From Eutreptiella sp. 'Long Island Sound 2002' (taxonomy: Eukaryota; Protista; Euglenida), in assembly GCA_964036045.1 (NCBI GenBank), contig OZ038378.1, forward strand, positions 91,450,001-91,514,000: a DNA stretch of 64,000 nucleotides, in the 5' to 3' direction. Numbering within the stretch: the stretch's first letter is position 1; the number at the start of each line of letters is the position of its first letter. A program made the translations under genes and the position numbers. The notes below the pieces were generated by a model. The model saw only the letters and a list, made by a program, of their open reading frames with translations. It searched no databases and was not told where the DNA came from. Below, in pieces: positions 2,439-62,071 of this stretch.

Positions 2439-2513
2439 CACCGAGCTGGTGGAACCAGTCTTGGTTTTATAACCCTTTTTAGTGTCTAGGGTGGACCTAC
2501 CAGGTTTAGCAGC

Positions 2514-2548
<35 letters not shown>

Positions 2549-3593
2549 GCACGCGCGAAATGGCTAAAAATCAGAATTCCGTCGTGGTGCTTCGGATTCG
2601 GGTGAAATTTTGGTGCATGATACCTATGCGTGTGAAGTACAATCACACAAAGTTTGAGCAAGAAACTCAACGGTGGCGGCCGGGAACAGGATTCGCAAGT
2701 GGCGGACCTCGGTTTCAAAAACTGCAGTTTAGGGCCAAAAATAGCCATTTTTGGGCCAAAAAAGCCCTGGAACCCATTCAAAACGGCCAAATGAAGGGGA
2801 ACGGTGGGTACACTCCACGCGCGGCTTGACTTCCCCGTGTCAACGAGCCCTTTGCGGCGCTCTCGCTCCATGATATGTCCCGAGAACGGCCCAAAAAGCC
2901 CGCAGAAGCTCCAAATTTTGTGTAGATTGGCTGTCGACAGCCACAAACCAAGAATAGGCCATATCTTTGGCTACATGGCTCAAAATGCGATTCCGAGGGC
3001 ACCTACTCCACCCGCAACCCCCCACTTTTGTGGTTTCCAGCCCTCAGAATTGCCCAAACGGACGCCTAGACCCCAATACCTAGCCCCACTAGGCCGCGGC
3101 AAGCTACAAGCTCAAGCCCAAACAGGTGGGTGCCCAAATGGGTCAACAGGGTCCAGTAGGGGCAAAATGATGACTTTTCTCAAAAATGATCCCAGACCAT
3201 GTGCGACGCTAAAACAAGTGTTTTTGGACCGTTTTGAGCTTGTGGTGGCCCATTTTGGTCCTCCGAAAATCCCAAAATGCCTTGAAAAAAGGCTGTTTTG
3301 GGACCAAAAATGGGTCAAAAATGGGTCAAAAACACATTTTTCCAAAACTCATCCTAGACCATTTGGGGTGCACAAACAGGTAAAATGAGCCCATTTTGAG
3401 CCCATTTTGGGGCATTTTGGCCCCTCAGAAGTCCAAAAAGCCTTGAAAGTGGGCCTTGTGGTGATGGGGTTCACTTGCAAGCTGATTTCACTTTGTCAAG
3501 AGCCATCAATGTGTGAATCATTCTTGATGTCCCTCACCAGTCATAGCTGATGTTCCCTCCCCCACCAGCTTGGTCCCAATATTCAGTCTTGAT
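2439..3593 (+). mobile_element. Helentron/DINE-1-like non-autonomous element inserted in a TTAGGG tract
   Basis: It has a 13-bp subterminal IR, accgagctggtgg (2440-2452) and ccaccagcttggt (3562-3574), 12/13 matching. An (AAGC/AGC)n microsatellite lies at ~2505-2550. The 3' end is ...cagtcttgat, there is no TSD, and the flanks are agggt | tagggtt. Confidence 0.65.
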
Positions 3594-3722
3594 TAGGGTT
3601 AGGGTTAGGGTTAGGGCTAGGGTTAGGGTCAAGGGTAAGGTTTGTGGGTAGGGTTAGGAGTAGGCTGAGGATTGGGGTGGGCGTTAGAGTCAAGGTTGGG
3701 TTCAAGGATAGTGTTGGGGTGC
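3594..3722 (+). repeat. Interstitial telomere-like (TTAGGG)n tract, degenerating rightwards; its left part is at ~2400-2438
   Basis: The sequence reads tagggttagggttagggttagggctagggttagggtc, followed by degenerate hexamers. Confidence 0.9.
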
Positions 3723-4059
3723 AAAGTGGACAAAATGGGCAAGGGGAATGAAAAAAAAAATTCGGGCGCCTTCGGCGCCACCATATGTATGGCCAGTAGC
3801 TGTTGACCCTTGGCAACTAAGTGGGCCCGGAGGGCAGGGAGGGGGGGGGGGGAGTCGCGTACCAGAACCGAGCAGACGTCCCCCCCGTGACCACGGGTGT
3901 GTTTTGCATGCCATGGTGTAGTTCAGAGTGCCCAGCTTTAAATTTGCACCAAAGGGTTGCTACATTGAAAGGTGCAATACAGACTTGTTGCGTATCACCC
4001 TCTCCCAATGCCAGTGCTCTCTCTTTGCCCCTAGTAGACGTGCTCAAGGTAGATCATGC

Positions 4060-5549
4060 AACCCGTTTTCCCACAATAATACGAAAGGATTCCCATTCAT
4101 GACCGGACCAAATTGGAACATTTGGCAATTGCATCCTAGCTGGGCCACGGACTGGCTTCGGACCACACCCACTTACCGAGATCCACTTTGTTGGCACCAG
4201 GCTTATCTTTTGGCAAACGCTTTACCTTTTCCAACTCCTCATGACTACCTAAAGCATTACACTGTTGCAAGAGGAACCAGTAAATCAGCACACGACTGCA
4301 CGTCGACAGCGGCTACTATAGTAACATATGCCTAGATTCATTCAGCATGGGGTTCTCCGTATGCAAAAACACCATGTCCCATGTGCAATACCTTTTGATA
4401 CTGCCAAGTAGGGCACATAGCCCACCAGATGTGCACCCCGCAAAAGTCATGTGTGTCAAAATCTCTCCAAGGGTATCACGACCAAGACCCACGATACCCC
4501 TCATTGAAAAAGGGGGCAAGATGTGTCATGTGGAAAGTAAAAATCCGTTCACAATCGAGAAAATGCGCTACAACGAGTAAAATTTGGCAGGCGGGCAAAA
4601 ATCATCACAATTTCACCACTTTTAGTCTCAATGGCATCCACACTTGGGCCGGCACGCTTAGCAGCCCATTACACAAAAGATACAATTGGTTTCCAAGTTT
4701 CGTAGAGGTTATCTTGTGTTAGTGCGCGCATAAACAACGAACTAAGAACAGTGACGGTAAATCAGGGTAACCATTAACCAACACACAATGCAACGGTTGA
4801 AAATCCCGGCTTGCCACACTCACATAGAGCAGTACCAAGAGCTGACTTGGGGCCATCACAAATGTGCATTTCAGTGTCTAGGCAACGGCAGACGTGTCCG
4901 ATAGTTAGACTAGTAGTAGCATGCTGTATTGAATTCTGATCGTCAAAAATCATTGGCCGTGATTCCAGGGGACATTCACCACTTCCACCATCACATTGCT
5001 CAGCCAGTTAGGCGCCCCTTTGCCACACTTCACAGCATCCTTGCACATATCAACCAGAGCAGATGACACATGCTAGCCCCGAAATACCCAGTAATTCCCA
5101 GCTACAAAAAACGGTGCATGTGGTGGCAATAGAACAACAAAAGCGCGATGCAACACACGAACGAGACGCACGAGATTCGCTAGATGAGTTCAACAGCACA
5201 AACAAAATTAGCACACCCCAGCATCCAACCAGCACATCACAAAGATAGGTCGAGTTCGGGGGTTGGCCTACGGGTTCTCCCGTAGTAGCACCACCACTTT
5301 TGGGTCTCGGGTCCTGGCCTGCCCATGGTGTACGCTGCCATCAAACCTCACTTTGCATACTGGTACTTTTCGTAGGTCCTTGTGTACCCATTTCACAGGT
5401 CGGTCTTCTTTTAGTAAACCATGATACTTTCTTTTGGTACTGGCCTTTGTGGCCCCTAGGGACTTGGGCGCGACTTGGCTCAAGGAGAGATCCTCGTCGA
5501 TTGTACCCTCCAATAGGTGAGCTAAATGGGTAGGTTGTCCACTCAACAT
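4060..5549 (-). pseudogene. Element A accessory ORF-B (unknown function)
   Basis: WVHKDLRKVPVCKVRFDGSVHHGQARTRD aligns to B WIKKELVKIQLTKIKFDTDLTRGQTRERD. PFSMRGIVGLGRDTLGEILTHM...IKRYCTWDMVFL aligns to B PYTLRPLTGLHSDQMDEILLYM...LKRDRLWEMLYL. HEELEKV...DLGKWVWS aligns to B HEMQRVL...SLGKWT*S. Multiple stops and frameshifts. Confidence 0.8.
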
Positions 5550-6289
5550 TACACAGCAGGGGTCTTATCAAAAAGCAGGTGACATACTCAGGATTACGAA
5601 TTTCCCCCAAAACAAGCGATTGGCAGTTCCCATGAGCAGATTAACAGTGGCAACTCAAACTAGGCTTCAAAACCCTTCATCAGCAACACTACCCTCATCG
5701 AGGTCCAATAGAGACTGTGTGTTGACGCCTTGTCCAACACGTCACCTTGCCACCCCTTCCGTCTCCCTCCCACTGTGTACACACATGCGCGCCTGTTGAC
5801 GGACACTCTGCACCGCCCCGGCGCCCCTGCGGTCAAATAACGCTGCACTGCGTTACTTTCTGCCAAGCATGTCCTCATGATAGGAATGTGATTATGTTAG
5901 TGGGCATCTGTTCGAAGGGGCACATGAGTGTCCAAAGTGGCAGTAAAGGCCTCATTGACCGAACTAGGGGAAACCAAAATTTGCAAACATTCCAAGCCCG
6001 GATCTGAAAAGTGGGAGCGGTCAATAGGTTGCGATAGTGGTAGTGGAAAGGAAAAGTCTTCAAGCCATAGCCAAAAAGGTAGAGGCCTTAGATTTTTGCG
6101 CTGCAGCGCGCAAACGGAACAATATCCCGCCTCACAACTTGTATGTGGGCCCATTACATTACGCTCAACCAAAGGCACGCTATCAGCGGGACTACTGGCC
6201 TGCAGCCTATCGTGCTCCTTCATACTAGCACGTGTCACCGACACAAACTAATCGAAACATTGCTCAACGGATGCCACAGCCACGTTGCA

Positions 6290-7883
6290 AGCGAGGCGGT
6301 GTACAGCACAACTAACTAATGCCTCACACGGCTCCTCTTGGAATTGCTGTGGTGGTGAGCCGTCATGCCACTGGAACCACGGTAGGAGAGCAACTATAAT
6401 GGACCTTACATACTCAACGTGCTACTCCTTAGGCATACCCAAGTGCGTGATTATTTGCAGACTCCCATCCAACATGTCTCATACATTTTGGCCAGTGGCC
6501 CCACCCCAATAAGACTCTCAAAAATGGGTACGAGCGAAAAATAGGGAAGGCACGTACTCATAGAGAAACATCTTCAGAGTATTCAGTTGGGATAGTTGCA
6601 GCTCAGTTGCAACGGAGTGCGGCCTGGCCCGCCTAGAAATAGCCGCAACCTGCAGATTTAGCATGTCCCACACTTTATCAACAACAACCGGCAGGGAGCC
6701 AAATAGCCTATCGTTGAAAATCAGTGTGTGTGACGTGGGTAACTCATATTCTTCACGCAATTTGCCATAAACAACATACATCACAAACAGGAAGGCTACA
6801 GAATAACAACTCGTTACGACATACTTTTGGGGGTGCCATATGGCATACAGGGAGAGGTATCTGGCCTCGGAAGCGGCCTAAGGTCCACCGTGCATATGAC
6901 TGCCCATAGAAAATCGTACAAATGTGGTAAAAAATGTTCTCATCAACAAGAACAGGCACAATGCAGCCCGTGTGATGTTGTACTTCCCGCAACATGTGGA
7001 GAAGCTGTACCAACTACCTATGTACACCAACCACCAGTTGTGACAATAGAAATGCTCTCCATGGGAAGCTGCCTACACGCCTCCAGCTCGCATCAAGTGG
7101 GTAACGGGTGTCCTTCAGTGGTTACTGGCTTGGCAGCAATAGTCTGAACAATACTGCAAAACTGACGACGATTGTGCCGCAATACACTCGAAACATCCCC
7201 AACACGGCTCAGGAGGGCAAAACGTGAGGGAAAACCCGTATACATGTCTAGCGGCCGAGGCATAGGGACCATGGTAGCAACTGTGGAATCCAAGGAGATA
7301 TCAGCAGACCCGAGCAGAGGTCACAAACACCACCTGCAAAAATTGTCCATCCAGAGTAGAAGTTGTGACCCACATAATAGCTCCCACAACGGTGCGGCTA
7401 CACCAAAAGCCTGACGAGCCTAGGGGCCAACCCTGGCAGCACAGGCTCCAGCTTTGCTCAAGAGACGCCGTTCTTTGGGGCCAATCCCACTCACTGTCTC
7501 CAATGGAGGCTTGGACTCAGGCAAGCAATGTGCATGTGTCAGTCTCCAAAGATTGAAAGTTGCTTGTAGGCTTTAGCTCCACCGCTGCAGGGCTGTGAAT
7601 CCCATTTGGACTTGTTTCCTCTGCCGCAAAAACTAATATCACCCAATGTATATCTAGAGCACGCATCCCCCTGCAACTGAAGCGACCAACTGACCGATTC
7701 CCCAGCAACAATGCTTGGCAGTGCGGCATCTGCCACATCATCGGCAGAGGTGAAAAGCAGTTGTACCAAGAACTCACGTAATGGTACAGGATCTGTGGCC
7801 CATGACAGTACCCATCTCAGCAAGCCGTACACAAAGTATTGTGAGTACTGCAGCGTGCAGTCAATGGAGTTCAATGCAACCAA
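6290..7883 (-). pseudogene. Element A DDE-like transposase (degenerate)
   Basis: Motifs PLREFLV, WMDNF, RPLD..FPS, VLVDENIFY, YAIWHPQKY and VEYVRSII...EEPCEALV are collinear with the B transposase motifs PFRQFLI, WFDKF, RPVD..FPS, LLVDENIHY, YGTWHPYKY and VEYVRTIV...KEPCEALL. Confidence 0.85.
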
Positions 7884-8489
7884 TGACCATCGTTGTCACA
7901 AAAGCCATCATCTTTGTGTGGATCATGTGATTTGAGAATTCAAACATAAATGTGTGTGCCCCAAAAACAAATTGGAAGAAATACACACACAAAGCAATTT
8001 TACACAAATAAACTGCGCTGGAGCGCAGTGCAATCAAACAATGAATTCAAATACACACCATATCGGTGATGAATGACCAATCAAAATCGAGTCTCCCGAA
8101 GGACACGTGTGCAACACAGAGAGGGGCATGAAACTCAAGAGATTTTGAAAAAGCGTGTCGCAACCCAATTTTGGGTTGGAAAAGGGTTTTGAAATACCTA
8201 TGCAACCATTGGCCAAACAAGCAATTTAAAAAAAGGCACTGTAGTGGATTGGATGTACAAATCCTGGCAATACCCCCCCCCCTCCAATGCAAATACACCC
8301 AGCTAGCGGCAATGTCGGAATGGTCTTTTGTTTTGCATGTTTTTTGTTTTGCTCCCCCCCCCTAACTATCCATATTGCGGATTGTGTAGGTTGTTACGTT
8401 ACCGCGATCCCATTCAGAAACACCAGTGCTTGTGTAGCTGCAAAATGATTGTCAAATCTAGTATTGAAAGCCATGGGAATGTGATACAA

Positions 8490-15744: not shown

Positions 15745-16296
15745 CCCACAGCCATTTTGATGTACGTGCTATCTTTGTGTGCTCCTCATCCTCCTATGGT
15801 CAGCCCCTTGGTGCATCCGACAACCTCTATCATGTGGCTTTCCACTATAATGGACACCCACCGCTTCGTTCTTGGCCGTGCCGGTTGCGGTTGCAGCGGC
15901 ATCACCCGCACTTACTTGGACTCATCTTGGTGTTCATGACCTGCATGTGGCGGACGAATTCCAGAGCCGTTGCTTGTAGCTCCTCCACCGAAGGCTCTAT
16001 GACCACCGTGTCATCAACCGCTGAAATCAACATCACCCGAACTGTCGCTTCTGCAAGGTGGACATGTACGCCTAGCCTAGTCCCGTGCATTGCTATGAAG
16101 AGCATGACCGTGTACAAGACGTAGAGCAGCGGGTCCATGCCTTCACCTTGCACCAACCCAGCTGCGATCTTGTCTAGGAGGGTGAGATCGTGCGCTGTTA
16201 CCATAGAGACCGGGACGAGGTTATGCAACGTCATTGCTTGCTACCCCAGGAACTACAAAATTGAATCGCAGCCTATCACCGCACTCATTGCACCTT
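15745..16296 (-). pseudogene. Non-LTR retrotransposon 1, RT domains 4-6 (3' part, right of the microsatellite)
   Basis: AAGLVQGEGMDPLLYVL resembles the G..QG..LSP motif, ISAVDDTVV resembles YxDD, and MNTKMSPSKC resembles the domain 6 N..KC motif. Confidence 0.8.
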
Positions 16297-16976
16297 CTTA
16301 GGCGGCTCTATACGCACGTAGCAAAATTGCCACAGCTCCCAAATGGGTACCACCCCAAAACGGGGGCTGAAAAACCACTTTGAAAAATTGCACAATTGTG
16401 CTTTGCAGAGAACACCCCAAAAAACCTGTGAATTATCCAAAATGACTGTGTGTAGGGGGTACAACATGTGCCAGTCAAAAGTCATGTATCCCCTTCAAAT
16501 TTGGGCACTGCAGTGTCCGTCCAAAGAAAAATCCAATTCTTCCAAATCATCCGCTGCTGCATTTCAAACCATGCCGTAAAATGCAACCTAAAAAATGAAG
16601 CAAGGAGGACGACATGCAAACACATGCAAAAGTCTGGTTTGCTTTTTGTTACCGCGTCTGCTGACCCAGTCACTGTGATTGTATGCGAAGCGTCAAGAAT
16701 GATGCACCACCAGTGGTGCCGACCAACAACGGAGGCGCCGCCAGTGGAGGCAATCCAATAATAAATGACAACAACAATGCCTGCAAAAGAAATGGCCCAG
16801 CAGGGGTAAAAAAAGGGCGAGTCGCTGAGTTTGGGCATTGCAGCGCCCAAAATTACCAAAACATGAAAAAGGGCACCAGTCTCACACCTGCATAGAACAG
16901 GACGCGCGACAGTGTGCAAATCGAGGCGAAAAAACTACTGACATGGTCACAGGCAGTGCCAACCGCACAACGCAGT

Positions 16977-17822
16977 CTACTTCTTCTTTGGTGGAGCCTT
17001 CTTACCCTTGGCCTGACCTACTTTGGCGTGAAACATATTGAGGGGGGTACTGTCCTTGGCCTTTTTGGCTGGCCTTTTGGGGGGATCATCAACCTCATCC
17101 CTACTGTCGTCGGAGGACGGCTTCTTCTTGCTGGGGGTGCTCCTCTTCTTGCTGTCACCACCTCCGACCAGCACGATCTCGTCATCCTCCTCTTCCTCCA
17201 CATCGTCCCCCCCCTCCTCATCTTCCCCTTCCCCAGGCCGCTGCACCACAACTGGCATACAGTCCCTAATCCTTGGCATCCAAGCGTCCCAGTTAACCAA
17301 GTAGACACAGTCCATCTCCTGCACATACGCCGCTAGCTGTTCACAGAACTCGTTAAACAAACCCTGGCGCCCAGTGAAGCAAGCTGCCAGACAGGGGGAC
17401 TCAGGAAGGCAGGACAGGAGCTGTGCTGGCAATACAGCCGATGCTGTCAAAAGCAGGAGCCAGACTTCATCCTCGGACTGTCTGTCGCGTCGGGGAACAA
17501 TACCAAGCACACGCAGGAGCCAACCAGCCGCCGCCAGACCAATGGTGCTGCCGTATGCACCCTGATCGCAAATGAAAATATTCGGGACCTTCACCCTAAA
17601 CTTGTCGGGGACACAGAAGCAAATAGTCCTCTCCTCGAACCGATAGGTCGGGTGACCGACTGCCTGATCAAAAAAAGAGGTCATAATATACTGCCAGCCT
17701 CCACACTCCTCAGAGTCGCGCAATTGATTAACTAGGAACTTAACGTCAGCCGCCATTCCACCAATAGCCACAGGTACCAACTTCGCAGCAACCTTCAGCA
17801 CCAGCGGATGGATATGGTCCAT
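16977..17822 (-). CDS. Element B accessory ORF-C, 281 aa, conserved N-terminal part plus acidic/Lys-rich tail; unknown function
   Basis: It is an uninterrupted ORF with homologs in A and E. The tail is D/E-rich, then has KK-rich NLS-like clusters. The true 5' end probably lies further upstream in a decayed region. Confidence 0.7.
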   Translation of the reverse strand: MDHIHPLVLKVAAKLVPVAIGGMAADVKFLVNQLRDSEECGGWQYIMTSFFDQAVGHPTYRFEERTICFCVPDKFRVKVPNIFICDQGAYGSTIGLAAAGWLLRVLGIVPRRDRQSEDEVWLLLLTASAVLPAQLLSCLPESPCLAACFTGRQGLFNEFCEQLAAYVQEMDCVYLVNWDAWMPRIRDCMPVVVQRPGEGEDEEGGDDVEEEEDDEIVLVGGGDSKKRSTPSKKKPSSDDSRDEVDDPPKRPAKKAKDSTPLNMFHAKVGQAKGKKAPPKKK

Positions 17823-18099
17823 TTGTTCCTTCGTACACTCAATGAAGACCTATTGTCAAAAGCACATTTCATTACAGATGGGCAATGCAGTGCCTAAAGT
17901 GACCAGCAATGCGAAATCGATCCCATTCTTATGCCTAATGGTTGCATACCGCTTTGTACTCCCTCAATGCAATCGTATAGAGGATAGCCTTGCCAGGAAC
18001 CAACGCAATTGCCTCTGCCCAAGCTCCGGTTGCTTCAGTCCCATCTTGCGGCTTGTTGAGCCAGATAGTTGTTGATTTCTGCCCATCAGTCGTTGTCAC

Positions 18100-19653
18100 T
18101 GCAGTTTCCTTGACAGGCCTCGCCGGCGCAATCCTCAGGTCAGCCCATTCCTCATCCTGCCACAGCGGTGGTTTCTGGATGGTGTCCCAGCTTGGTAAGG
18201 GATTTTCGGCACTCTAGGTCCATTTCCCCAGTGACAATTTGGCGGCCCTCGGCGACTTTGCAAGCAGTTTGAGGACTCTTTGCATTTCATGCACGTTCAC
18301 TGTTAGAACAGGAGACCACTGGTACCACTGGGATCGAAACAGCCTGGCGTCGTGGGTCCGGGGGGGGGGGGGGGGTCAACAGCGATCGCGCCAGACCCTG
18401 CCGCCCCATAAACATACGTCGAGAAGGATGGCTGAGCGTGTTGTCCGGGTAAAGGTATAGCATCTCCCACAGGCGGTCCCGCTTCAAGAGTCTGGCCTTG
18501 GCATGTAGTCCTGTGATCTTGGCTGCATCTCCAGCCATGTACAGCAATATTTCATCCATCTGGTCACTATGCAGTCCCGTCAACGGCCGCAGAGTGTAGG
18601 GATTGAGCACTGCAGTGCAAAAATTAGGGTCGCATCGAATTTGGGCACTGCAGTTCCCATGAACACCAAAAGACGACGAAAACAGGTGCTCGGAGGACAT
18701 AATACCTTCACCGGCAGTCTTCTCAAAGGTGTCAACAAACTCAGCCACGCGGCCACCAGATATCTGCAGTAATGAAACCAGCGGTCTCCAAATTTTCCAG
18801 ATTAAGTCCTGGCAGGGATACAGTGTTGGACAGGCCACAGGTACGCAAAGGACTGACAACGGTGGTCTCATCGTGCATCTCTCATAACACAGATGTTTTC
18901 TCGCCCAGTCGGCCACACTTCCGCAGAGCCACCAGCAGCATCTCTTTCGCTTTGCCCTTCTGCACTTCAGTCCAAATTCGAGCGGCCACTTGTCCCATAC
19001 TCAGCTTGCTCACTGAGTGTTGTACCGCATTGTGATCGCCTCCAATAATCTCTCTGATGTCAACAGGACAGTCGTGTCTGATCTCCTCACAGTAGACGTG
19101 TTGTAACCAGTCTGGCAGTGCCCGTGACTTCTCACAGTATTCTCGGTGAAGTCTTTGGAGTGCTGTCAGGATATGAGCCCCGCCCAAGCAGTAGGGAATT
19201 TCAGCTGATAGAAAAATGGACCACAGGGAGATGGGAGATGGGAGATATCAGCGAGATGGGCACTGCAGTGCCCAATTGACCAGACTGTGTCAAAATTACG
19301 ACGCGTGTGTGACAGGATGGTAGTGTACCTTCGTTTCGCCATATGAGAATGTTTGAGATAGGCCGGCAGGGTGGATTTGTCCTCAGGCTTGCGATCCGCG
19401 ATAGTACTGAGTCCTCGTCCCTCTCTCTGGTCTGCCCACGCGTGAGGTCGGTGTCAAACTTTATCTTGGTCAGCTGTATCTTGACCAGCTCCTTTTTGAT
19501 CCACGGTGCCCGGAATGTTTCCGTTGCCCGGTCGGTCCCCGTCCGCTTCACTGGAGCCTGCCCCGACTGCGCCCGTGTCTTCTCTGCTGTGTGAACGGCT
19601 TGCGATGCGGTCTGCTGCTCATCCCCTTCCGGCAGTTCGGTATCCGAAGGCAT
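18100..19653 (-). pseudogene. Element B accessory ORF-B (~500 codons over several frames); unknown function
   Basis: ORFs 19201-19653, 18882-19187 and 18287-18916, plus a tail to ~18100, each align to the A copy; the YT[LM]R and LW..HPSR segments also align to E. Confidence 0.8.
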
Positions 19654-20224
19654 AGCTCAGCAAAGGGGCTAACAAAGGGTCACACGACACACTACAAAAG
19701 GCCACAGGGCTGCAAATTGTTGATTTACAGGCTTCTAATGTTGATGACTACTGGGAGCGCTCGACGATTGAACACAGATGGCAGAAATAGCATCACAGTC
19801 GGATGCACCTGGTAAAAATCGAGGGTCAAACTCATTCAGCTCCGAAAGGACAGCCACGGGGGCGTCGGAATCATCACTGTGAACCGACACTGTTTCTGGA
19901 GGGGAGGGGGTCCGGGTCCCATCCATCATCACCCACAAAATCAGCAGCCCTCAGGTCTGGATCTCCGGCTGCCCCACCAGCATGGGGGGGGGGGGTCCTC
20001 ATCGCTGTCACTGTCGCCATCAGCATTGGGGGGGGGCGGGTATCCGGGCGGGGTCCCTTTGCGCAAAAGCGCGTGCTGGCCGGCGTCGCTTGTACCGGTC
20101 TGGTGTATTACATGCGCGTAACATGTCCTGTGCCTGTGCTACTGTTGTGTCCATATCACCTGGAGGACGCTGTGGCACGTGTCTACCCAGCTCTGTCATC
20201 ACATTAGCATCAACTTTAACAGGT

Positions 20225-22169
20225 TTAACAAGTGTCTGCAATGTCTTGGCACGTAGATCTCGGTAATGCTGCAGTGAGCACCGTATCTAGTGCGCAAGGA
20301 AAATCCATCTTGGCAGGATCCCACCTGTCTTGCACGATACTCGACCTTTGACTGGACCAGACCAGGGGGGGTATAACACCAACATCGAATCGCGCCATCA
20401 ATCTGGTGAACCGACGATCAACCAGTTGTGGCAGTCCCTTGGGAACATTAACGTACTGCAGGTCCTTTGGGGTCTGGTCTGCAACGGGAGTGAGTATAAA
20501 CAGGTCATGCACCTGTTGCAACGTACAGTTCCGAGGGTGTTGTGCCATTAAGTGCACAACACGGCTTAACAGGGCCTCACACGGTTCCTTACTGTGTGCC
20601 ACCCCAGGTAAGCGGGCAAAGCACTGGGACCACAACAGCCTAGCAACAACAATGGTGCGCACATATTCAACCTTGTCCTCATAACCTAGGGTGAGCCTCA
20701 GAAGGACGTGTAGACAACGGCTCAACAATGGCCCTGCAGCGTGCTGCTCTCCCTGTGCAGACCAATGACAATCCCTCACTTGCGACCCAATAATAAACAA
20801 GGCTGGAATGTAACCACACAGCAGTGTTACCAACCCTTGCACTTGTGTAAGAAGTGTGTCGGTGCAAACCCCTTAGAGTCTGTAACTTCTGTTCCAAAGG
20901 TTGGCGCCACTTATGGGCCAAGTGCAAGAGCACTAGAATCATACGCTCCATATAGATGAGTTTCGGAAAGTTGGGCACTGCAGTGCCCAAATTGAGTGAA
21001 CCATAGGAAAAATAGGTAAATAAAGGGAAGAATCTTCTGTAGCACAGGGTTACACAATATTTATATGGGTGCCATGTGCCGTACACTACCGGGGTACGTG
21101 TAATGAATAGGGGCACGTTGTACCGAGCATAGCTGATGCTGTAAACGAGCTTAAGGACACAGTAGTGAATATTTTCGTCGACCAACAATGGAAGACGGTG
21201 CTGTGTGTGCTGCTGCACCTCCTAGAGCCCGTGAATAATAGAGACAAGGTCGGGGGTGGCGGACACAGTTAGGTCTGTGAGAAAAAAGGGGGTCCAAGCT
21301 GGGCTGGTAACATTATCCCGTCGTATGTCCAAGGGACAACGAACTAGTTGAAGGCGGATGGGGTCGTCCATCAACCCTTGCAAGCCATCAATGAAGTTTT
21401 TATGGCTCTGCACCAACAAGTCTGCAGTGTACCCAATCCTCTGCCGCAAGACCGAGAGGCTAGGAAAAGACGGCATAATGTCGACAGGTCGTTTCAAGAG
21501 TATGATAGCACCAGCTGTACAATTAAGGGACCAGTTCTCATTACCAGGCACATGCCGGAAGTTACGTCTATAAAACTTATCAAACCATAGAACAGCGGGT
21601 TTACCTTCCAAGGTCTACCAAAGACTGGTGCAAGCAGTTGCGCCTTGAACTGCAAAGGAGGGTACATTGTAAGAACATTGACCCATGTGAGCCAAACACC
21701 TACCTTGCACACGACTCTTGGGTTGAACACCTACAGCCCTCTTGGCACGTGGACGACACCTCTTGTGTAGAAGAGACCATATATTAAAAATCTCTTGCTC
21801 AGCAACACGGAACCATTGGTCCGGCAGACAATTAACGGTCCGTCTGTCCCTTTGTTGGATGTATTCACCAACAGACCGCCTACTTCTCCACTCCAACCGG
21901 AGATCTAACACCCACGTACAAAACGCATCGGCACCCTTATCCACACCCACAGCCTCAGATAGATCCTCCTTTGCAGCATATACCTTCGAAATAAGGAACT
22001 GCCGGAAGGGAGCCGCATTCATGGACAAAAGTCCTGTTCGCAGGCAGCAAAGGTAAGGGGACAAAGAAAACATAGGCACCATCACAAAACAAACCTGATG
22101 CGGCATAGAGCAAAAGCAGCTAGCGAAGATCCAAACAATGTATCCCCCAATGGACGTGGGACGTTCCAA
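20225..22169 (-). pseudogene. Element B DDE-like transposase (~650 codons), Academ/DUF6589-like by motif layout
   Basis: ORFs 21615-22169, 21222-21611 and 20679-21218 share one frame and are separated by single TAG stops; a frameshift then leads into 20225-20842. Candidate catalytic motifs are WFD, LVDENI, GTWH and KEPCEAL. The family name is an inference. Confidence 0.8.
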
Positions 22170-22556
22170 AGCCTGGGTACACTTTAAGGTGGCAGTCAGA
22201 CAACCGGCAATATATTTCCAATGAGCAGAGGAGGAGTACCAACGTCCGATGATTCATACGTCCTTTGTCAGGTGTTACGCAATGGGAACCAATAGGAGTG
22301 AAATACGGAGTTTTCAAATTTTTGGACACTGCAGTGCCCAAAAGTACTGGAAGTCCATTTTGAAGTGCACATTTGGACACGAATGGAATTGATTGGGCAA
22401 GGTACATTGTACGTGGCCTTCCGAGTATAACACCGCGGTGCGATGACCCATGGATAACGGGTATGCCAAGGTTTGATGCATGCTGCTGCAGTATGACATC
22501 ACCTGTGGAGATGACTACAGAGGTGTACTGGAGAACCCACTGAAAAAAGCCATTTC

Positions 22557-22588
22557 AAATTTTTGGGCACTGCAGTGCCCAAAAATTT
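22557..22588. repeat. Perfect 32-bp palindrome aaatttttgggcactgcagtgcccaaaaattt, the best copy of the element-B motif
   Basis: Read directly. Other copies begin at 16503, 16833, 17880, 18605, 18643, 19258, 20973 and 22324. Confidence 0.95.
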
Positions 22589-22800
22589 TCAATGATACAA
22601 TTTTCAGCCCGGAATAGGGGGTGTATACGTACACCTCTGGAAGCAACAAAAGGCAAGTTTGTTTTATCCCACGATGAAAATCCACGTGGGGTTGGCCGAA
22701 AAAATGATATGCTTTTTTTAGGTGCAAAAAACGGATGTTGAAATCGCCATGAATCGTGCCTTTTAGCAACGAAGTCTACGTGCGTATAGAGCCGCCTAAG

Positions 22801-23300
22801 ACCTTGGTAAATGGAACCATACACATTAGATTGGTTAGTTTTCAGCACCGCCACTCCTAATCCTTGCTCACATTATGGAGAAAGCACTGGATGTGGGATG
22901 GGGACGGGCCTTTGAGGATCGCAAACTAACACCACACAAAGTGTGCCGGCACAAGCAGCTGAAACAGCAGCGTCGCCGGTGCCTAAGCACGCCTCATTCA
23001 ATCAAGATTGGCCGCGTGTTGGTAGTGAGATTGTCACCTAGGCGCTCCACCACTAGTATTTGTGGAGCCGTATGGGCCTCCTCAGGCGGCTACTCCGTTG
23101 TGCACATGAGCAGGTCACCCATCAGCATTAGTGTGTACGGGCCAAACGTCGTTGCTAGTGCTCAGCAGTTTCCGTCCCAGGTGGCTGCTCATGAAGATTG
23201 GTCACTGGACACTTGCAACAACTCCCTTGCGGTCATCATGCGGTGCATCGCTTGGTTGACTGCCCCCTTTGATTCTTTAATGGCTTGTTTTCTTGCAGCC
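22801..23300 (-). pseudogene. Non-LTR retrotransposon 1, RT domains 0-3 (5' part)
   Basis: PEEAHTAPQILVVERLGDNLTTNTRPILIE resembles the domain 1 RPI motif. AVLKTNQSNVYGSIYQG resembles domain 3 (D..nAfgsv). It joins in frame across B to AMSAVIG...MTLHNLV. Confidence 0.7.
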
Positions 23301-24010: not shown

Positions 24011-25853
24011 TCCATACCCTTAGGAGGCCCATAGTGCCCCCTATCGTTTTTTCAAAAAAAAAAAAAAAAAGATGTTGTGCACAGAGCCTAGCCTCTCGGC
24101 TTCATACCCAAGCATAATGGAGGGGTTGTTCCTAGCTAGGGTTTATGGGAAGGAGTAGTGATGCGCAATTTAGGGGTGCGAAGCCCAAAAAAAAAGCACC
24201 ATTTTGGGCCCCCACAACATGCGAGTGTAGCCACTGTTTTTTCCAATTTTTGGAGGTACGAAATACGGAAATTGGACCGGCAATGCCATAAAACTATGTT
24301 GCACAGTCTGAAATGACAAATGGTGCACGTATTTGTCAACGGCACGTGGCGCGGTTGGCCTAGCAATCATAGAATTGTGACGGCGATGATGACCATACAT
24401 CGACTGCTTGTGAAGAAGGTGTACCCCAGAATAACAGATAACAACGACTATGCAAAAGGAGGGTGTAAACAAGCCTTTTCGATAGGCTGGGCTCTGCAGG
24501 GCCCAAAACCAGGAAATTTCCTAAAAACATGTGTCACAATGCAGGGTTGCACACCAACACAACAAAGGCAAACAGGAAGTAACAGGGCCCAAAGTAGGGA
24601 ATTCTTATTGGTTGGGCTGTGCAAAGCCCAAATCAATAGAAACAACAGAAAGCAACCATCAATTACAATAATGATAAACACGCCGGACCACTAGTGTGGT
24701 AATAGGTACCATAAGCGGCGTACTGCATGGTCCTGCCCCCCCCCCCCCCATCCCCCGGAATTTCAGTCACACATATGCCAAAGACCACCACATCACCGGT
24801 CATAGACAAGGCATGGAAGCTGCATACATACTAGTCGACGAGTATGAAGCGCAAAAACACAGGAAACGAAGCACAAAAATTGTAAAAACCTTTACATGCG
24901 TTGTAGCAGGTCCGTCAAAACTCTAGAATTGGTGTTGTATTGACTACAGATTGATGTGTCACCAGATGTGGTTCATAAGCACCTACTAACACCGGGACAC
25001 ACAAAGCCTGTTTCCCATTCTAAATCCCTAGCAAATGAGAAATTATCAATCTCTGGTCGACACCAACGAAAACCGGTCACAAATGGCAGTAAAAAATGTA
25101 TCATCGCACATTGGGCAGTGGCAAAGCAGTGCCCAACATACGCACTGTCAACCGTTGGAGAAACAAAAAAGGCAAGACAGATCAATGAAAATGTGGCATA
25201 CATGACAACGCCAAATGTAACGTGGCCCAGCAAATAGTGGCAAACCTATGCCCCGCATACACACTGGTGATCGGACTCTGGGCATACTTGGTAAAGTCAA
25301 AATGACAGACACATTCGCTTGAGCTCTGTAGGGCCCAGGAACAGGTAATCAACCATGTCACGACTCAATCGAGGGATACTGCATCTGGGGTTTGTAGTAT
25401 ATGGGCTATTGAAAAAATAGCACATCAACAGTGCAACTAGGGTTCATAGACACATACCTGGCACCGTATATGCACCAAAATCGTGATCAAACTCGATAAT
25501 TTCTGCACTGTGTCAACGAGGGACGTACCAAATGAAATGCCATAGCACAGTGTTGCGTTCTTACAACCAAACTCATAGGGACAACACTACACTGCTGAGA
25601 TGAGGGCAACGTTCCAACCTTCTAGACGCCATGCACATTTGACTAAGACAGTATGTTGGGCTTTGCAGAGCCCAACAATACAAGATTCGTCATATTCGGG
25701 GGCAAATCAATCAAATCTGGAAGGCTGGGCTCTGCAGAGCCCAGCTCAGTGCAAACGGAAAAAAAGACATTCAAATTCCGTCACAAACCTGTACAGAGAC
25801 AAACAGGGCACATCGTTGACTGTCCCACAGTTGTTTGGGACTGCACAGTCACA

Positions 25854-26872
25854 TCAGGCCCACACCATTCCAGCACAGTCATGATCCAGCGATTCGTGGG
25901 GCCTCCAGTCACTTGCCGTTGCTTGTGCCGTTGCTCTTGGATAAGCCAACCCTGAGACCACGTTGTAGGGTAGCCTAGAGGTGGTGGAGCGCCCTTTTTT
26001 TCTGCGATGGAGATGCTGCACCAGCTGCCGTTGCCAATTTATTGTCTTCTTCTTTCCCCTTGCAATTTGCTCGCTCGTCCTCTTTGGCGTTTTTCTCCTT
26101 CTCCTTCTCCTCCTTTTTACTTTGCCGCTCCCGCGCCTCCTCTGGCTTCCACAACTCGCGCCGAGCCTTCTCGTGCTCCTTCTGCCGTTGTTTATTGGTT
26201 TTCCCTTCCAGTTTGGGAGTTGGCGGATCCGGCACCTCCACAATTTCTTCCTCACTAGTGTCCGCGTCAGCTGCCTGGTCAGGGGACTCGTGCTGCTAGA
26301 ACAGATGCTGAACAATGCTTGCCCAGTGCATGACACTCCGCCGCTCAATAACCTCCTCCGTGTCCCCTTTCCGGACGCTGTCTTCAGCACGTTCACCACA
26401 TCAGCTGCATTGTATGGACTATCAGATGATACACCCCATGCGCAATTCAACGGGACAGGCAAGTGAACACAACCCAAACTGATCAGGTCGGGGCGGCGGC
26501 CGTAGTACAGTGCCCACAGGCAGCGCGATGCATCAATATCCATGTGTGTGTCGCCCGTGTCGTCGTTTGGCCCTCCAAGGAATTCAACAACCACCACAGG
26601 ATAGCCAAACCCGGCCACAGACCTCCGGTGAACGACTTTTGCGTGAGGAAGTGCGGCACAGCAGTGCCGAGACCATGGGTCTTCACAAGCAACAAACTTG
26701 ACTGCTCGAATAAATACAGTTCTTCTTTGTGTCCCAAATGGTAGACAGGCATGCGCAAAGCTGCTGGGCATAAATCTTCCAAATCGGAACGTAAGTGTGG
26801 TTCCACAACAACCAAATCCTCATGGTGTCCATGAAAGGCGCCAAGTACGCATTGAGACAGCACACGCATCAT
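25854..26872 (-). pseudogene. Element E accessory ORF-C homolog with acidic/basic tail
   Basis: YLFEQSSLLLVKTHGLGTAVPHF...GLAILWWLLNSLEG aligns to B YRFEERTICFCVPDKFRVKVPNI...GLAAAGWLLRVLG. It has a KE-rich tail (25975-26241) and is frameshifted. Confidence 0.7.
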
Positions 26873-27123
26873 CTGCGCACCAGGAATCCAGCCTCCTCGC
26901 TAGGAGATTTCAACGATGACGAGATGGTACCTCATGATTTTGATCTCATTGGGCACTGCAATCACTGATCCATCGTACACCCAAATTTCTCCAGATTTTG
27001 TGCCCTGCCCACATTCACCTTGGTCTACATTTGCCGCCTCGCCATCGGACGACTCAAAAGGCGGGTTTGACACTGGTCTCACAAGCAGTCTACGATGTCT
27101 CTTCGACATTTTCTCGATCGCCG

Positions 27124-29667
27124 ACCCACAGACCTGCCTTCAACAGCGCCTGGAGCGGTGGCCATGGAGCGGACTCACTCTACTCCCAGCTCCCTTGCCA
27201 TGCACCAAAATTCGCTAGATGGTGACCAAACTTCTTCGAGATGCGAGCCACTTCAGCCTTAGTGCCTGTGTGCACAGGAGCAGAGGAGAGCACCTTGTAA
27301 CAGGATCAAGCGATCCACAGGGTCAAAGTGATGTGGCACAACGTAAATTTGCATTCCTTGGGATCCCAGGCTCTACAAAGTCCTGCACTCTAAAATCGGG
27401 AATCTGACGGCTAACATCCGTCAATGTGCTTGATCTAGGCTCTGCAGAGCCAAGCATGACCAAAATGGTGAATTAGGGGGTGTCTGAGGAGGGGGGGGTC
27501 CTCCTACATCATCACGCACGGTTGCACCATTCAACAGCAGTGAAATGGCGGACGTTCCAGCAGGCAGAGTGTCCGTGTAGATCCAGTCAATTGGCTTCCG
27601 ATGGGATCGTGGGCTCTGCAGAGCCCAGTAATTTCAAATTGGTAATATGACGGCTGAAATTGGTCAATGTGCTAGATCTGAACTGTGCAGAGCCCAGCAT
27701 GCACAAAACGGGAAATTAGGGGGTGTCAGCGGGGGGGGGGGGGGGTCATTGGACAGCATTAGGCAAGGTGGCACCAGTCAACATCCGTGAATAGCGGAAG
27801 TTCAAACAGGCACAATGTCTCTATAGATCCACTGAAGTTGCATGCCATGGGATCCTGGGCTCCGCAAAGGCCAGCAAACTCAAATTGCTTGGTGACACAT
27901 TGAAATCGGTTATTACACTTCATCTACGCACCCTGTTGTAGCGGCCCATTGAATCGGAGTTGCATTACAATGTCCCACAACGAAAGGCAGGGAGCTTACC
28001 AGGCAATAGCATACATCTTGAAGGGTGGATGCACTGAACCTGCATGTCGGGATGACCAAAGTGATGCCACCACAATTCCCTAGCGCGGAGCTCCTTTGCC
28101 AGCTTCCGAAAGCTTGGTACTGTACTCTGCGGCGAGGCCATGTAGTTGCATACGCACGACAAATTTTCAGGTTGCATTCCAGCGAAGCATCGCATTGTAT
28201 AAAGGGCAATCACCTTCTTGCGTTCCGGCATCTTGCCGAGTGTGTCCGTGAAGGTGGGCATCACGGCCATATGGGCAGCTGGCGTCATTTGCTTGACGAT
28301 TGTCACCGTGTTGCCAGATTTCCTACTCAGCGCCGCCTCCACGATTGCCTCACACATCAAGTTGACAATTGTCTTCTTACATTGTGTGTCCTGACCAAGG
28401 CGGCTGACGACACACAGTGTAAGAAGTTGATGTGTGAGGCAATCGTGGAGGCGGCGCTGACTAGGAAATCCGGCAACACCGCGACAATCGTCAAGCAAAT
28501 GACGCCAGCTGCCCATATGGCTGTGATGCCCACCTTCACGGACGCACTTGGCAAGATGCTGGAACGCAAGCAGGCGATTGCCCTTTATACAATGCGATGC
28601 TTCGCTGGAATGTAACCTGAAAATTTGTCGTGCGTATGCAACTACATGGCCTCGCCGCAGAGCACAGTACTACGCTTTCGGAAGCTGCAAAGGAGCTCCG
28701 CGCTAGGGATTCGTGGTGGCATCACTTCGGTCATCCCAACATGCAAGTTCAGTGCATCCACCCTTCAAGATGTATGCTACTGCCTAATAAGCTCCCTGCC
28801 TTTCGTTGAGGGACATTGTAATGCAACTCCGATTCAATGGGCCGCTATGACGGGGTGCCTAGATGAAGTGTAATAATCAATTTCAGTGTGACACCAAGCA
28901 ATTTGAGTTTGCTGGCCTTTGCGGAGCCCAGGATGCCATGGCATGCAAATTCAGTGGATCTATAGAGACATTGTGCCTGTTTGAACTTCCGCTATTCACG
29001 GATGTTGGCTGGTGCCACCTTGCCTAATGATGTCCAATGACCCCCCCCCCCCCCCCCCCGCTGACACCCCCTAATTCTCCATTTTGTGCATGCTGGGCTC
29101 TGCACAGTCCAGATCTAGCACATGGACCAATTTCGGCCGTCATATTACCAATTTGAGCGTACTGGGCTCCGCAGACCCCACGATCCCATCGGAAGCCAAT
29201 TGACTGGATCTACACGGACACTCTGCCTGCTGGAACGTCCGCCATTTCACTGCTGTTGAATGGTGCAACCGTGCGCGATGATGTAGGAGCCCCCCCTCCC
29301 CCCCCAGACACCCCCTAATTCACCATTTTGGTCATGCTTGGCTCTGCAGAGCCTAGATCAAGCACATTGACGGATGTTAGCCGTCAGATTCCCGATTTTA
29401 GAGTGCAGGACTTTGTAGAGCCTGGGATCCCAAGGAATGCAAATTTACGTTGTGCCACATCACTTTGACCCTTTGGATCGCTTGATCGTGTTACAAGGTG
29501 CTCTCCTCTGCTCCTGTGCACACAGGCACTAAGGCTGAAGTGGCTCGCATCTCGAAGAAGTTTAGTCACCATCTGGCGAATTTTGGTGCATGGCAAGGGA
29601 GCTGGGGGTAGAGTGAGTCCGCGCCATGGCCACCGCTCCAGGCGCCGTTGAAGGCACATCTGTGGGT
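27124..29667. repeat. 2.5-kb fold-back inverted duplication, arms ~1.27 kb, spacer ~18 bp near 28400
   Basis: The centre reads cttcttacattgtgtgtc-ctgaccaaggcggctgac-gacacacagtgtaagaag. The ORF MVTKLLRDASHF...KSGI appears on + at 27219 and on - ending at 29384. The arms are similar but not identical. Confidence 0.95.
27913..28390 (-). pseudogene. Element E accessory ORF-B fragment (mirrored at ~28410-28873 on +)
   Basis: YTMRCFAGMQPENLSCVCNYMAS aligns to B YTLRPLTGLHSDQMDEILLYMAG. LRARELWWHHFGHPDMQVQCIHPSRCML aligns to B LKRDRLWEMLYLYPDNTLSHPSRRMF. Confidence 0.75.
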
Positions 29668-37670: not shown

Positions 37671-38589
37671 GTGCCTCTATCCCACTTTGTGGGTAATGCC
37701 GAGAGCGTGCCGGTAGGGGGTGGCCCAAAGCCAGGTGGGTGCTGCGGCACTCATGACAACTGTCGTCCAGCACGTGGAGGGCGATCCAGCGCGACTTGCG
37801 GGGTGTACACGTGGATGGAGTGTGATGCCTAGATGACTTGATTGCAGCACTTCCCTTGCTACTATGGTGGACTGCGCTGGACGGTGACTCCCCACATCTT
37901 TGGCTCTGGCATCACAAAGGCGTTTTGTAGGGGAGTTACTAGTTTCGGGGGTGATGCTGTGTGGCCAGGCGCGATAGTGGGGGGTATGCCGAGTGTTGTC
38001 CGTCTTGTGGTTGAGAGGTGGAGATGGCATATGCGAAGTGGCCTTCTACCCGCTTGTGTCGGCAGCAACGGCGGACCTGATATGACGGCCATCGCGACGT
38101 GGCACGTCGTGCGGGCCTAACAGTGCACGGTGCCACCTCCGCATACACAGTTCGAACGATGAAGTATGGCTGCGCCCACATTCCCCGGGTTGCCGGTTAC
38201 AAAAGTGAGGTGTCATGGGTCGTCCTAACCAGGGTACGAAGGCCCAAACCCCTATAGGGTATTCCCATGGCACCGGGATCTCTAACAGCGGCCCGGTTAC
38301 GGCACTCACGGGGGTTCATCCTCGGGTAACTCTGGGGAGTTGAGTGGAAACGTACATGTCCTTCTAGCAGCGCCGCTGGTGTCGGCCATGGGCTGCGGGC
38401 AGCAGCTCCGTAGGTCGGGCCGCACATGACGACACAACCGCATGGGTGGCGGCATGGGTTATGTGGGGGTGCTGCAAGTCAGAGACAAATGGTGGTTAAA
38501 GAAGGACATGGGCGTGGACGTCTGACGCGGGCAGTGAGGGCTAGATGGTGCGTACCTGTATGCGGCCTTGCGGCGGGGGGGTGCCGCTA

Positions 38590-39100
38590 TGGGGGTGCCC
38601 CTTGACCCTAGGAACAACTCAAGCAAGTATTGGGGCAGCCCACAGGCCGCGGAAGAAACTCAGTGCGGGTAGAGGGGTGTCCCCTGACCCCAGAACCAAC
38701 TCAAGGAGGTATGGGGGCCACCCACGGGCCCCGGGAGAAAATCTGTGGGGGGATAGGTGTGTCCCCTCACCCGAGGAGCAACTCACGGAGGTGTAGGGGC
38801 CACCCACGGGTCCCAGAAACAATTTAGTGGGAACACTTGGGTGTCCCCTGACCCCGGTACCAACCCGGGGAGGTATTGGAGCCGCGCACGGGCCGCGGAA
38901 GAAAATCTGTGGGGGCAGGGGGGTGTCCCATGACCCCAGGACCAACTCAGGGAGGTAAAGGGGCCGCCCACGGGCCCGAGAAACAATTCGGTGGGAGTAC
39001 TGGGGTGTCCCGTGACCCGTCGAACAACTCATGGAGGTACTGGGGTGTGCCTCTGACCTGTGAAACAACTTCGAGGGAGTACCGGGGCATCCCATGGCCC
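38590..39100. repeat. Degenerate ~82-bp minisatellite (~6 units plus two ~39-bp half units)
   Basis: The motif gggtgtcccctgaccc...aactc recurs at about 38675, 38758, 38841, 38924 and 39005. Confidence 0.85.
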
Positions 39101-61930: not shown

Positions 61931-62071
61931 CCAAATGTTAACCAATATTACACAAATCCACTTTGCCATACACTTTGGGGGTGAGAAATATTGTGTGATG
62001 CATATAGGCTTATGGGTATTCACGCTGCCAGTCATGTATGTTCACTGTCCAAGATCAGTAGCTCCTATCAA

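Follow-up and report, generated by a model that had tools for sequence, protein, structure and literature searches.

We analysed a 64,000-nucleotide stretch of the genome of the euglenid Eutreptiella sp. 'Long Island Sound 2002' (contig OZ038378.1, positions 91,450,001 to 91,514,000; hereafter the window, numbered from its first letter). Positions 16297–22800 of the window hold what is very probably a DNA transposon, which an earlier note, made from the sequence alone, had described as complete and as a candidate for a new lineage. This element (element B) is 6,504 bp long, and all of its genes lie on the minus strand: a transposase gene, followed downstream by two accessory open reading frames (ORFs), ORF-B and ORF-C. 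Its ends are as follows.

16292–16296, plus strand: left target site duplication (TSD), ACCTT; the 5-bp length is backed by three other copies
16297–16321, plus strand: left terminal inverted repeat (TIR), 25 bp, CTTAGGCGGCTCTATACGCACGTAG, perfect match
22776–22800, minus strand: right TIR, 25 bp, CTTAGGCGGCTCTATACGCACGTAG, 0 mismatches
22801–22805, plus strand: right TSD, ACCTT, matching the left flank

The perfect 25-bp TIRs reported earlier were confirmed as a unique pair without mismatches: CTTAGGCGGCTCTATACGCACGTAG has exactly two sites in the window, where none would be expected by chance, and no further match was found in these 64 kb when up to three mismatches were allowed. Related TIRs are present in four other copies. 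The window copy alone has one extra complementary base pair outside the TIRs, so that a 3-bp TSD could also be read there. The duplications of three further copies from a public ENA assembly (CATGA in L001, CATGT in L005, and CCAAC in L006) are 5 bp long and lie immediately outside CTTAGG...CCTAAG. Because these copies have unrelated flanks and all show 5 bp, the TSD length of the earlier note can be considered settled, with four different duplications including ACCTT. L001 (5667–5676) and L005 (5213–5222) have a common left flank, ggctacatg, and different right flanks, which could reflect either insertion into a repeated target or a preference for CATG-like targets.

Many copies of the element were found. 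P0195, an intact transposase of the window family with 696 amino acids (aa), is 92–99% identical to the four pieces encoded by the window copy, and intact versions of this length number in the hundreds. At 90% identity it clusters with others to a total of 288 members, a large share of them 696–700 aa long and located on different large contigs; the 90% cluster of ORF-B has 123. The transposase and ORF-C frames are all open in L005, a 6,521-bp copy which is 97.6% identical to that in the window. L006 is 95.9% identical, L002 belongs to a subfamily at ~90% identity, and L001 is a 3.4-kb internal-deletion derivative which keeps both ends. One sequencing run contained 3,167 contigs at 90–100% identity (summed word depth 6x10^3 to 9x10^4), and the element sequence was also present in estuary metagenomes. 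Natural intact copies, such as L005 and those of the P0195 cluster, could be used for bench tests without reconstruction.

The window copy itself carries the following lesions in its transposase gene.

22022 (ATG) to ~19951, minus strand: transposase pseudogene; intact relatives have 696 aa
21617 and 21224, minus strand: TAG stops in the reading frame
near 20859, minus strand: 20-bp deletion, by comparison with intact copies
near 20271, minus strand: 2-bp deletion, by comparison with intact copies
near 20036 and 19983, minus strand: small indels

Since both in-frame stops are TAG, an altered genetic code was considered and rejected: in the reads and contigs of other copies G replaces A at 21617 and 21224 (plus strand), giving CAG, and the proteins called on these copies have Q at both positions. 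The possibility that the frame changes are introns was rejected as well, because intact copies reveal the 20-bp and 2-bp deletions. Two of the conserved motifs discussed below also contain private mutations of this copy (WFDKF and SKEPCEAL, which read WFDNF and SEEPCEAL in intact copies). In the accessory region, a poly-C run of ORF-B is one C too long near 18375, and a conserved 'tail' exon upstream of ORF-C has a stop at 18214–18216. The element is thus complete in structure, as had been noted, but the lesions in its transposase gene, ORF-B and the tail exon mean that this copy is not autonomous.

TIRs, a TSD of fixed length, a transposase with a predicted RNase H-like DDE (Asp-Asp-Glu) core, and dispersed copies including deletion derivatives, by which class II TIR transposons are recognised, were all found. 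We consider it highly probable that window 16297–22800 is a full-length, inactivated copy of a recently active, high-copy class II TIR cut-and-paste transposon of a microbial eukaryote. This reading includes the 696-aa DDE transposase, the 5-bp TSD, an ORF-B with a ParB-like fold, ORF-C, palindromes specific to each lineage, and a kinship with DUF6589.

The transposase family and its relationship to DUF6589

The transposase had been estimated at ~650 aa, which is too short: its intact relatives have 696 aa, and full-length members of the family range from 670 to 800 aa. A search with the C-terminal piece against 1.84 billion representative proteins detected 336 clusters at E<=0.001; these are clusters at 50% identity, and at least 336 therefore exist in public data. 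Where the sources give a name to family members, it is 'hypothetical protein'. We aligned 20 of these proteins, and the alignment together with a structural model (see below) places four motifs in the window copy.

21573–21587, minus strand: WFDKF, with the predicted first catalytic Asp on strand beta-1; the next, invariant Asn is Lys here (alignment and model)
21168–21188, minus strand: LLVDENI, with the predicted second catalytic Asp just after strand beta-4 (alignment and model)
21060–21080, minus strand: GTWHPYK, the invariant G.WH.YK at the start of the predicted helical insertion domain (alignment and model)
20570–20593, minus strand: SKEPCEAL, the helix of the EExCEA motif, which holds the candidate catalytic Glu; Lys replaces the first Glu here (alignment and model)

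In the family these motifs take the forms W.DN, LVDxN, GxWHxYK and EExCEA. All four motifs listed in the earlier note are real and correspond to invariant or nearly invariant columns of the 20-protein alignment, but the K in WFDKF and in KEPCEAL represents mutations of this copy. Invariant residues of the alignment, in the numbering of the relative P0020, are W86, D88, N89, R167, P169, D171, R174, P217, D221, G254, W256, H257, Y259, K260, E299, W409, E424, E427 and A428.

To place these residues in a fold we used an AlphaFold2 model of P0020, which has a mean predicted local distance difference test (pLDDT) score of 84.5 and a predicted template modelling (pTM) score of 0.82. The order of its elements is strand 82–93 (containing D88), strand 105–116, strand 183–188, helix 195–212, strand 218–220 followed by D221, strand 251–253, a helical block at 256–420, and helix 424–439 (containing E424 and E427). 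In this model the transposase is an RNase H-like DDE core with a large all-helical insertion between beta-5 and the helix of the third acidic residue. Its conserved acidic triad, D88, D221 and E424/E427, occupies the canonical secondary-structure positions and represents the candidate active site. The earlier note had made its claim depend on an RNase H fold; this fold was looked for in the P0020 model and is present, leaving the claim standing. An alignment independent of Foldseek against 48,161 PDB chains gave a similar picture: the top 31 chains were all DDE transposases or retroviral integrases, with Z-scores of 10.1 for the P element, 7.9 for Hermes, 7.9 for Tn5, 6.5 for ISCth4 and 6.2 for Transib. 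The 20-member profile had no significant match among PDB sequences, no relative of the C-terminal piece was found in JGI metagenomes, and an ESM Atlas feature search on the transposase pieces was uninformative, with low recognition.

The closest named relatives were found by structure. Among AlphaFold DB clusters, the named best matches to the model are DUF6589 domain-containing and RING-type proteins (E 1.5e-9 to 2e-5, probability 1.0), and most of the remaining matches are without a name. An ESM Atlas cluster that consists entirely (100%) of PF20231 proteins aligned over 486 residues with a template modelling (TM) score of 0.58, and an unnamed Mucoromycota cluster over 499 residues (TM 0.61/0.51); the next families were hAT (TM 0.37–0.39) and IS66 (~0.3). 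The resemblance to Academ/DUF6589 transposases suggested in the earlier note therefore holds at the level of the fold but not at that of sequence, as no sequence or hidden Markov model (HMM) link to PF20231 was obtained. If DUF6589 is the Academ transposase domain, the transposase family would be either a deeply split sister group of Academ or a branch of its own within it, set apart by its TSD and its helper genes; it may be a sister superfamily to Academ.

ORF-B and the lineage-specific palindromes

Both co-oriented accessory ORFs of the earlier note proved to be real, with 23–40% identity to their counterparts in distant lineages. Six distant lineages known from metagenomes (L004, L007, L008, L009, L010 and L011) have kept this accessory region, which in each of them follows the transposase in the same orientation. 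Pfam detected no nuclease, helicase or PHD domain in the accessory ORFs of six lineages, in agreement with the earlier note. The predicted structure of ORF-B is as follows.

19329–19653, minus strand: exon 1, N-terminal tail and first half of the ParB-like domain (GQxR box)
19205–19328, minus strand: intron 1, 124 nt, GT-AG, phase 1, with a palindrome inside
18885–19204, minus strand: exon 2, rest of the ParB-like domain (GGAH box) and the helical region after it; 3' limit uncertain
18407–18820, minus strand: downstream conserved exons (DLIWKIW... and ...PDNTLSHPSRRMF), limits inferred

Introns were suspected in ORF-B because its pieces lie in different frames, including in copies with no damage to their other genes. 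Removal of intron 1 joins ...IWRNE to (A)EIPYCLGGAH..., and the spacing then agrees to the residue with the 326-aa ORF-B homologue of L008, which is uninterrupted (...VWPDPDGFYYLIGGQH...) and has no intron 1. At the same position, L004 has a GT-AG intron with two copies of its own palindrome inside, L011 has an in-frame GT-AG intron, and a GT donor can be read in L009. In one 151-nt contig from an RNA library, the match to the window stops at 19327, and the 17 letters beyond it agree with the beginning of exon 2 at 15/17 positions, which is consistent with the predicted junction with one base changed. A further intron, holding two palindromes, is probable between the downstream exons. In L006, at ~8790, the acceptor of intron 1 is mutated from CAG to CAT in an otherwise well-kept copy, and copies with an open transposase frame can thus still have a disabled helper gene.

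The earlier note had recognised none of the known Academ helper domains in ORF-B. In an AlphaFold2 model of the L008 protein, the N-terminal domain has a ParB/sulfiredoxin fold. The pLDDT is ~90 for residues 80–210 only, and the model is unreliable after residue 210. Foldseek matched it to ParB-CDP (6sdk, E 1e-4, probability 1.0) and also to ParB-parS, Noc, KorB and sulfiredoxin. In an unbiased alignment against the same 48,161 PDB chains, the best eight all have the ParB/Srx fold (PadC, Z 9.8; KorB, 8.0; pNOB8 ParB-N, 7.8; a serine kinase; sulfiredoxin, Srx 7.3; SbnI; Atu1540; and human sulfiredoxin). The nearest ESM Atlas clusters combine ParB_N with HTH_ParB or KorB, and an AlphaFold DB match is a Chara protein with ParB and N-4/N-6 DNA methylase domains. 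Pfam had no match to the seven accessory proteins examined, and an ORF-B profile had no significant match among PDB sequences.

Two boxes are conserved in ORF-B: GQxR and (I/L)(G/D/S)GQH..A, the latter being GGAH in the window family. The box aligned to the GERRxRA motif of ParB reads GGQH, DGQH, SGQH or GGAH across lineages, and the arginine patch is absent. Because GGQH/GGAH replaces GERRxRA, a clamp driven by cytidine triphosphate (CTP) is unlikely.

The second feature of the accessory system is a short palindrome, GGGCACTGCAGTGCCC, mostly flanked by TTT...AAA. Eight sites with up to two mismatches lie within the element, as well as a ninth with three, and 0.06 would be expected in the whole window (strand not applicable).

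16503–16518: 1 mismatch, 206 bp from the left end
16833–16848: 2 mismatches, just downstream of ORF-C
17880–17895: 2 mismatches, just upstream of the ORF-C ATG
18605–18620: 3 mismatches, pairs with the copy at 18643
18643–18658: 1 mismatch, pairs with the copy at 18605, ORF-B region
19258–19273: perfect, inside the predicted ORF-B intron 1
20973–20988: perfect, in the transposase coding sequence, where it encodes LGTAVP
22324–22339: 1 mismatch, upstream of the transposase
22565–22580: perfect, 220 bp from the right end

These sites, imperfect variants included, are kept in L005, L006, L001 and L002, i.e., in copies that are 89–97% identical. Palindromes of 12–22 bp are present in the other lineages too, each lineage having many copies of its own; such sites are located close to the two termini, in front of the genes and in the gaps that separate them, within introns, and now and then inside a coding region.

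Element E (in the window): GGGCTCTGCAGAGCCC, 4 copies
L004: TTCGCTCCATGGAGCGAA
L003: CGTAACnGTTACG, 12 copies
L007: GCGCGTACGCGC, 17 copies
L008: CCGAAATTTCGG, 17 copies, none in an ORF
L011: TCGTGGCCACGA, 4 copies

Some of the L008 copies form intergenic arrays ~70 bp apart. A script for TIRs and TSDs recovered internal palindromes only in metagenomic L003–L011, and these contigs are probably without element ends. Element E, which uses GGGCTCTGCAGAGCCC, is a neighbour of element B at window 24489–27626; compared with the palindrome of element B, its sequence has compensating changes in both arms, so that palindromy is kept. At ~1870 of L004 the transposase has GTAVP at the matching place, encoded by the near-palindrome GGAACTGCGGTGCC, and the dispersed palindrome of L004 is different. 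The coding site at 20973–20988 may be the origin of the B-type palindrome.

A possible mechanism can be proposed from these features. The transposase would cut at the TIRs and make staggered cuts in the target 5 bp apart. By analogy with ParB and KorB on their parS and OB sites, the ParB-like protein would bind the palindromes of its own lineage as a dimer, and this binding might either load the transposase on 'self' DNA or regulate the promoters of the element, as KorB does on RK2. That ORF-B is the reader of the palindromes is a plausible proposal, drawn from this analogy, whose chance we put slightly below even.

Rival readings and known ParB-like systems

One alternative is that the element is an ordinary member of Academ (AcademX or AcademH), already present in Repbase and too diverged for Pfam. 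DUF6589 proteins are indeed its nearest relatives by structure, over ~490 residues including the insertion domain, and a weak HMM signal is not unusual for Academ, whose RNase H domains were without detectable Pfam similarity as of 2017 (PMC5751038). Both groups are TIR-bounded cut-and-paste elements with extra genes and the same predicted DDE architecture, including the helical insertion and the C-terminal region. However, Academ TSDs are 3–4 bp in AcademX and 9–10 bp in AcademH, linked to a nuclease or helicase partner (PMC10045372). Plain membership is doubted because the TSD here is 5 bp, in four copies, and neither an XPG-type nuclease nor a helicase is encoded as a second protein, the helpers being the ParB-like protein and ORF-C instead; none of ten full-length proteins matched PF20231 at E<=1. 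We regard this alternative as improbable. The same TSD and helper genes back the earlier claim of a separate lineage with its own helpers, and we know of no lineage-specific palindromes reported for Academ.

It is very unlikely, in our estimate, that the element belongs to another known superfamily with an insertion domain, i.e., P, hAT, Transib or MULE, although the best matches among solved structures lie in such groups (rescoring of the Foldseek list again put the P element first, with Z-scores of 10.1 for the P element, 9.1 for Hermes, 7.8 for Transib, 7.0 for ISCth4 and 6.4 for RAG1). These values are modest for 680 residues, identity to these structures is 8–12%, hAT models reach a TM of 0.37–0.39 as against 0.58–0.61 for those of DUF6589 type, and Pfam detected no THAP, BED, hAT-dimerisation or other transposase domain. 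Transib, whose TSDs are 5 bp, would be the obvious candidate, but its Z-scores of 6.2–7.8 are below that of the P element, and the TIR here begins with CTTAGG, whereas the termini of Transib and of recombination signal sequences begin with CAC. The P element and hAT (Hermes) share an RNase H core split by an all-helical insertion before the catalytic Glu; they differ in sequence (identity 8–10%, with Z only 8–10) and in their THAP/GTP-binding or BED/dimerisation domains, which are absent here, and their TSDs are 8 bp long. It is hardly credible that the sequence is an artefact of assembly or part of an integrative or virus-like element: the only points for this are its several genes and its ParB-like protein, of a kind common in phages and plasmids, but perfect TIRs, 5-bp TSDs at four unrelated sites, deletion derivatives that keep their ends, hundreds of dispersed copies, the DDE fold and spliceosomal introns all speak for a transposon. 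As for the palindromes, they could instead serve the transposase, ORF-C or RNA, either as binding sites of these two proteins, as promoter or terminator elements, or as hairpins in RNA or single-stranded DNA (e.g., in intron definition). Subterminal repeats bound by the transposase are common in DNA transposons, and the outermost palindromes lie 206 and 220 bp from the ends; several others are in introns, where the CTGCAG centre offers a YAG; the ParB-like box is without the arginine patch of true ParB; and a sequence-specific helix-turn-helix (HTH) in ORF-B is only conjectural. On the other hand, a ParB-fold protein and lineage-specific palindromes occur together in every lineage examined, palindromes are known targets of ParB, Noc and KorB, all of which are among the structural matches, and L008 has intergenic palindrome arrays with none in an ORF. 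The same pairing has also been noted independently in red-algal Plavaka elements (bioRxiv 10.1101/2025.02.11.637652). Such other roles are a real possibility but on balance doubtful.

Besides these other roles, several points weigh against our interpretation of the element as a transposon with a DUF6589-like transposase and a ParB-like helper. Pfam at E<=1 had no match, PF20231 included, on eight raw ORF pieces of the window and ten full-length relatives, and the family profile recovered only its own family from a collection of 5.8 billion proteins. The link to Academ further depends on DUF6589 being the Academ transposase domain; the one paper found to name DUF6589 does not mention Academ. 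The transposase model was built on P0020, which is 37% identical to P0195, from a 73-row alignment and not on the window copy; that of ORF-B was built on a homologue only 25–30% identical, from 14 rows. Pfam ParB_N did not match ORF-B at E<=5, even with the intronless L008 protein, and the Foldseek alignments of 200–235 columns extend into the DNA-binding domain of ParB but do so past residue 210, where the model is unreliable. The RNA evidence is thin: three metatranscriptome libraries gave low-depth contigs across all three genes, for which DNA carry-over is possible. Another RNA-library contig spans the second predicted intron of ORF-B unspliced, and the limits of the downstream exons are uncertain because it crosses this intron without a gap.

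ParB-like helpers of transposons beside repeats have been described in algae, in Plavaka and Sola1 (2025), and what is new here is the pairing of such a helper with a third, unrelated transposase. In red-algal Plavaka, PAG3 combines a ParB-like domain with a 2-oxoglutarate (2OG) oxygenase and adjoins tandem arrays of inverted repeats, and self-binding has been proposed (bioRxiv 10.1101/2025.02.11.637652). Plavaka, which is related to CACTA/CMC, thus resembles the window element in its N-terminal ParB-like accessory domain and neighbouring inverted repeats. It differs in its transposase superfamily, its 2OG-oxygenase domain and the giant size of its elements, whereas the window element has no recognised enzyme domain after the ParB-like part and carries palindromes across its whole 6.5 kb. 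Sola1-1_Ec32 of Ectocarpus encodes a ParB-like protein with a DNA methyltransferase, proposed to act on its own DNA (PMC12477816). Like the window element, it is a DNA transposon of a eukaryote and encodes an accessory protein of ParB-like type, but it has a Sola1-type transposase, places the gene on the opposite strand, includes the methyltransferase domain and is 21.5 kb long. Bacterial ParB, Noc and KorB share the ParB/Srx fold and the use of several short palindromes across a replicon; their box is GERRxRA rather than GGQH/GGAH, and here there is no ParA partner, the host is a eukaryote and the gene is spliced. KorB sites on plasmid RK2 often lie near promoters. None of the papers searched connects Academ or DUF6589 with ParB.

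Returning to the transposon reading, a tentative hypothesis, which we consider possible but not favoured by the odds, is that these elements form a separate, widespread lineage of superfamily rank, in which the ParB-like protein and the lineage palindrome co-evolve as a self-recognition module. If so, the module would be the equivalent in eukaryotes of ParB-parS or KorB-OB, would govern either the choice of DNA for the transposase or the transcription of the element itself, and would account for the coexistence of many related lineages in one genome without cross-mobilisation. Independent recruitment of ParB-like modules suggests that they are useful to transposons, and the ParB-fold protein with its lineage-specific palindromes could serve to test directly whether a mobile element can encode an address label for itself. 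For a large, unnamed DDE family, the analysis provides a predicted fold and catalytic triad, termini, a TSD length and a gene set, and ties the family, by structure alone, to the poorly understood Academ/DUF6589 group.

ORF-C and neighbouring features

The third gene of element B comprises the following features.

16977–17822, minus strand: ORF-C, an intact ORF of 281 aa that encodes a conserved domain and a tail which is first acidic and then rich in lysine
18052–18240, minus strand: conserved 'tail' exon, fused to the ORF-C homologue in L008

ORF-C is 31% identical to its homologue in L004 and 23% to that in L008. In L008, the homologue forms the C-terminal part of a 423-aa ORF whose N-terminal part matches the tail exon of the window (18240–18052). 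Going by this ORF, which joins the two parts, ORF-C probably has a further exon upstream, where the gene would start, separated from the rest by an intron with the palindrome at 17880 inside it. In every lineage ORF-C has an acidic stretch and, after it, a tail rich in lysine.

No family or fold match to ORF-C was obtained by Pfam, PADLOC or a profile search against PDB sequences. In a language-model feature search with residues 1–215, the nearest clusters were basidiomycete DUF6532 and DUF6698 (score 0.93, 130–153 shared features). This likeness is a weak lead, and these DUFs may be transposon accessory proteins themselves. ORF-C (window 16977–17200) and all its homologues, including those in L007–L010, have at their end an acidic run, then KK-rich stretches and finally a short hydrophobic motif (e.g., PLNMFHAK, LDVFASRL or RLGQAYMG); speculatively, this terminal motif faintly recalls a PCNA-interaction box.

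Other parts of the window were also examined. An Rfam scan detected no RNA family, a PADLOC run gave no match, and no relic of a dinoflagellate spliced leader was found in the window. At ~729–8300 lies element A, a related but decayed element in which the transposase gene is likewise followed by ORF-B, at ~30% amino-acid identity. The sequence at its left end, CTTTGGCGGCCAGTTACGCAC, is similar to the TIR of element B, and the element is interrupted by another insertion holding TTAGGG-type repeats. A large nested inverted repeat, with arms of 260–375 nt and 94–97% complementarity, is present at 27124–29667, where element E is situated. Three tandem arrays were also noted: one at 38511–39084 (82-bp unit, 5 copies), one at 42445–43400 (10-bp unit, ~96 copies), and a satellite with a ~600-bp unit at 61971–64000, which reaches the end of the window.

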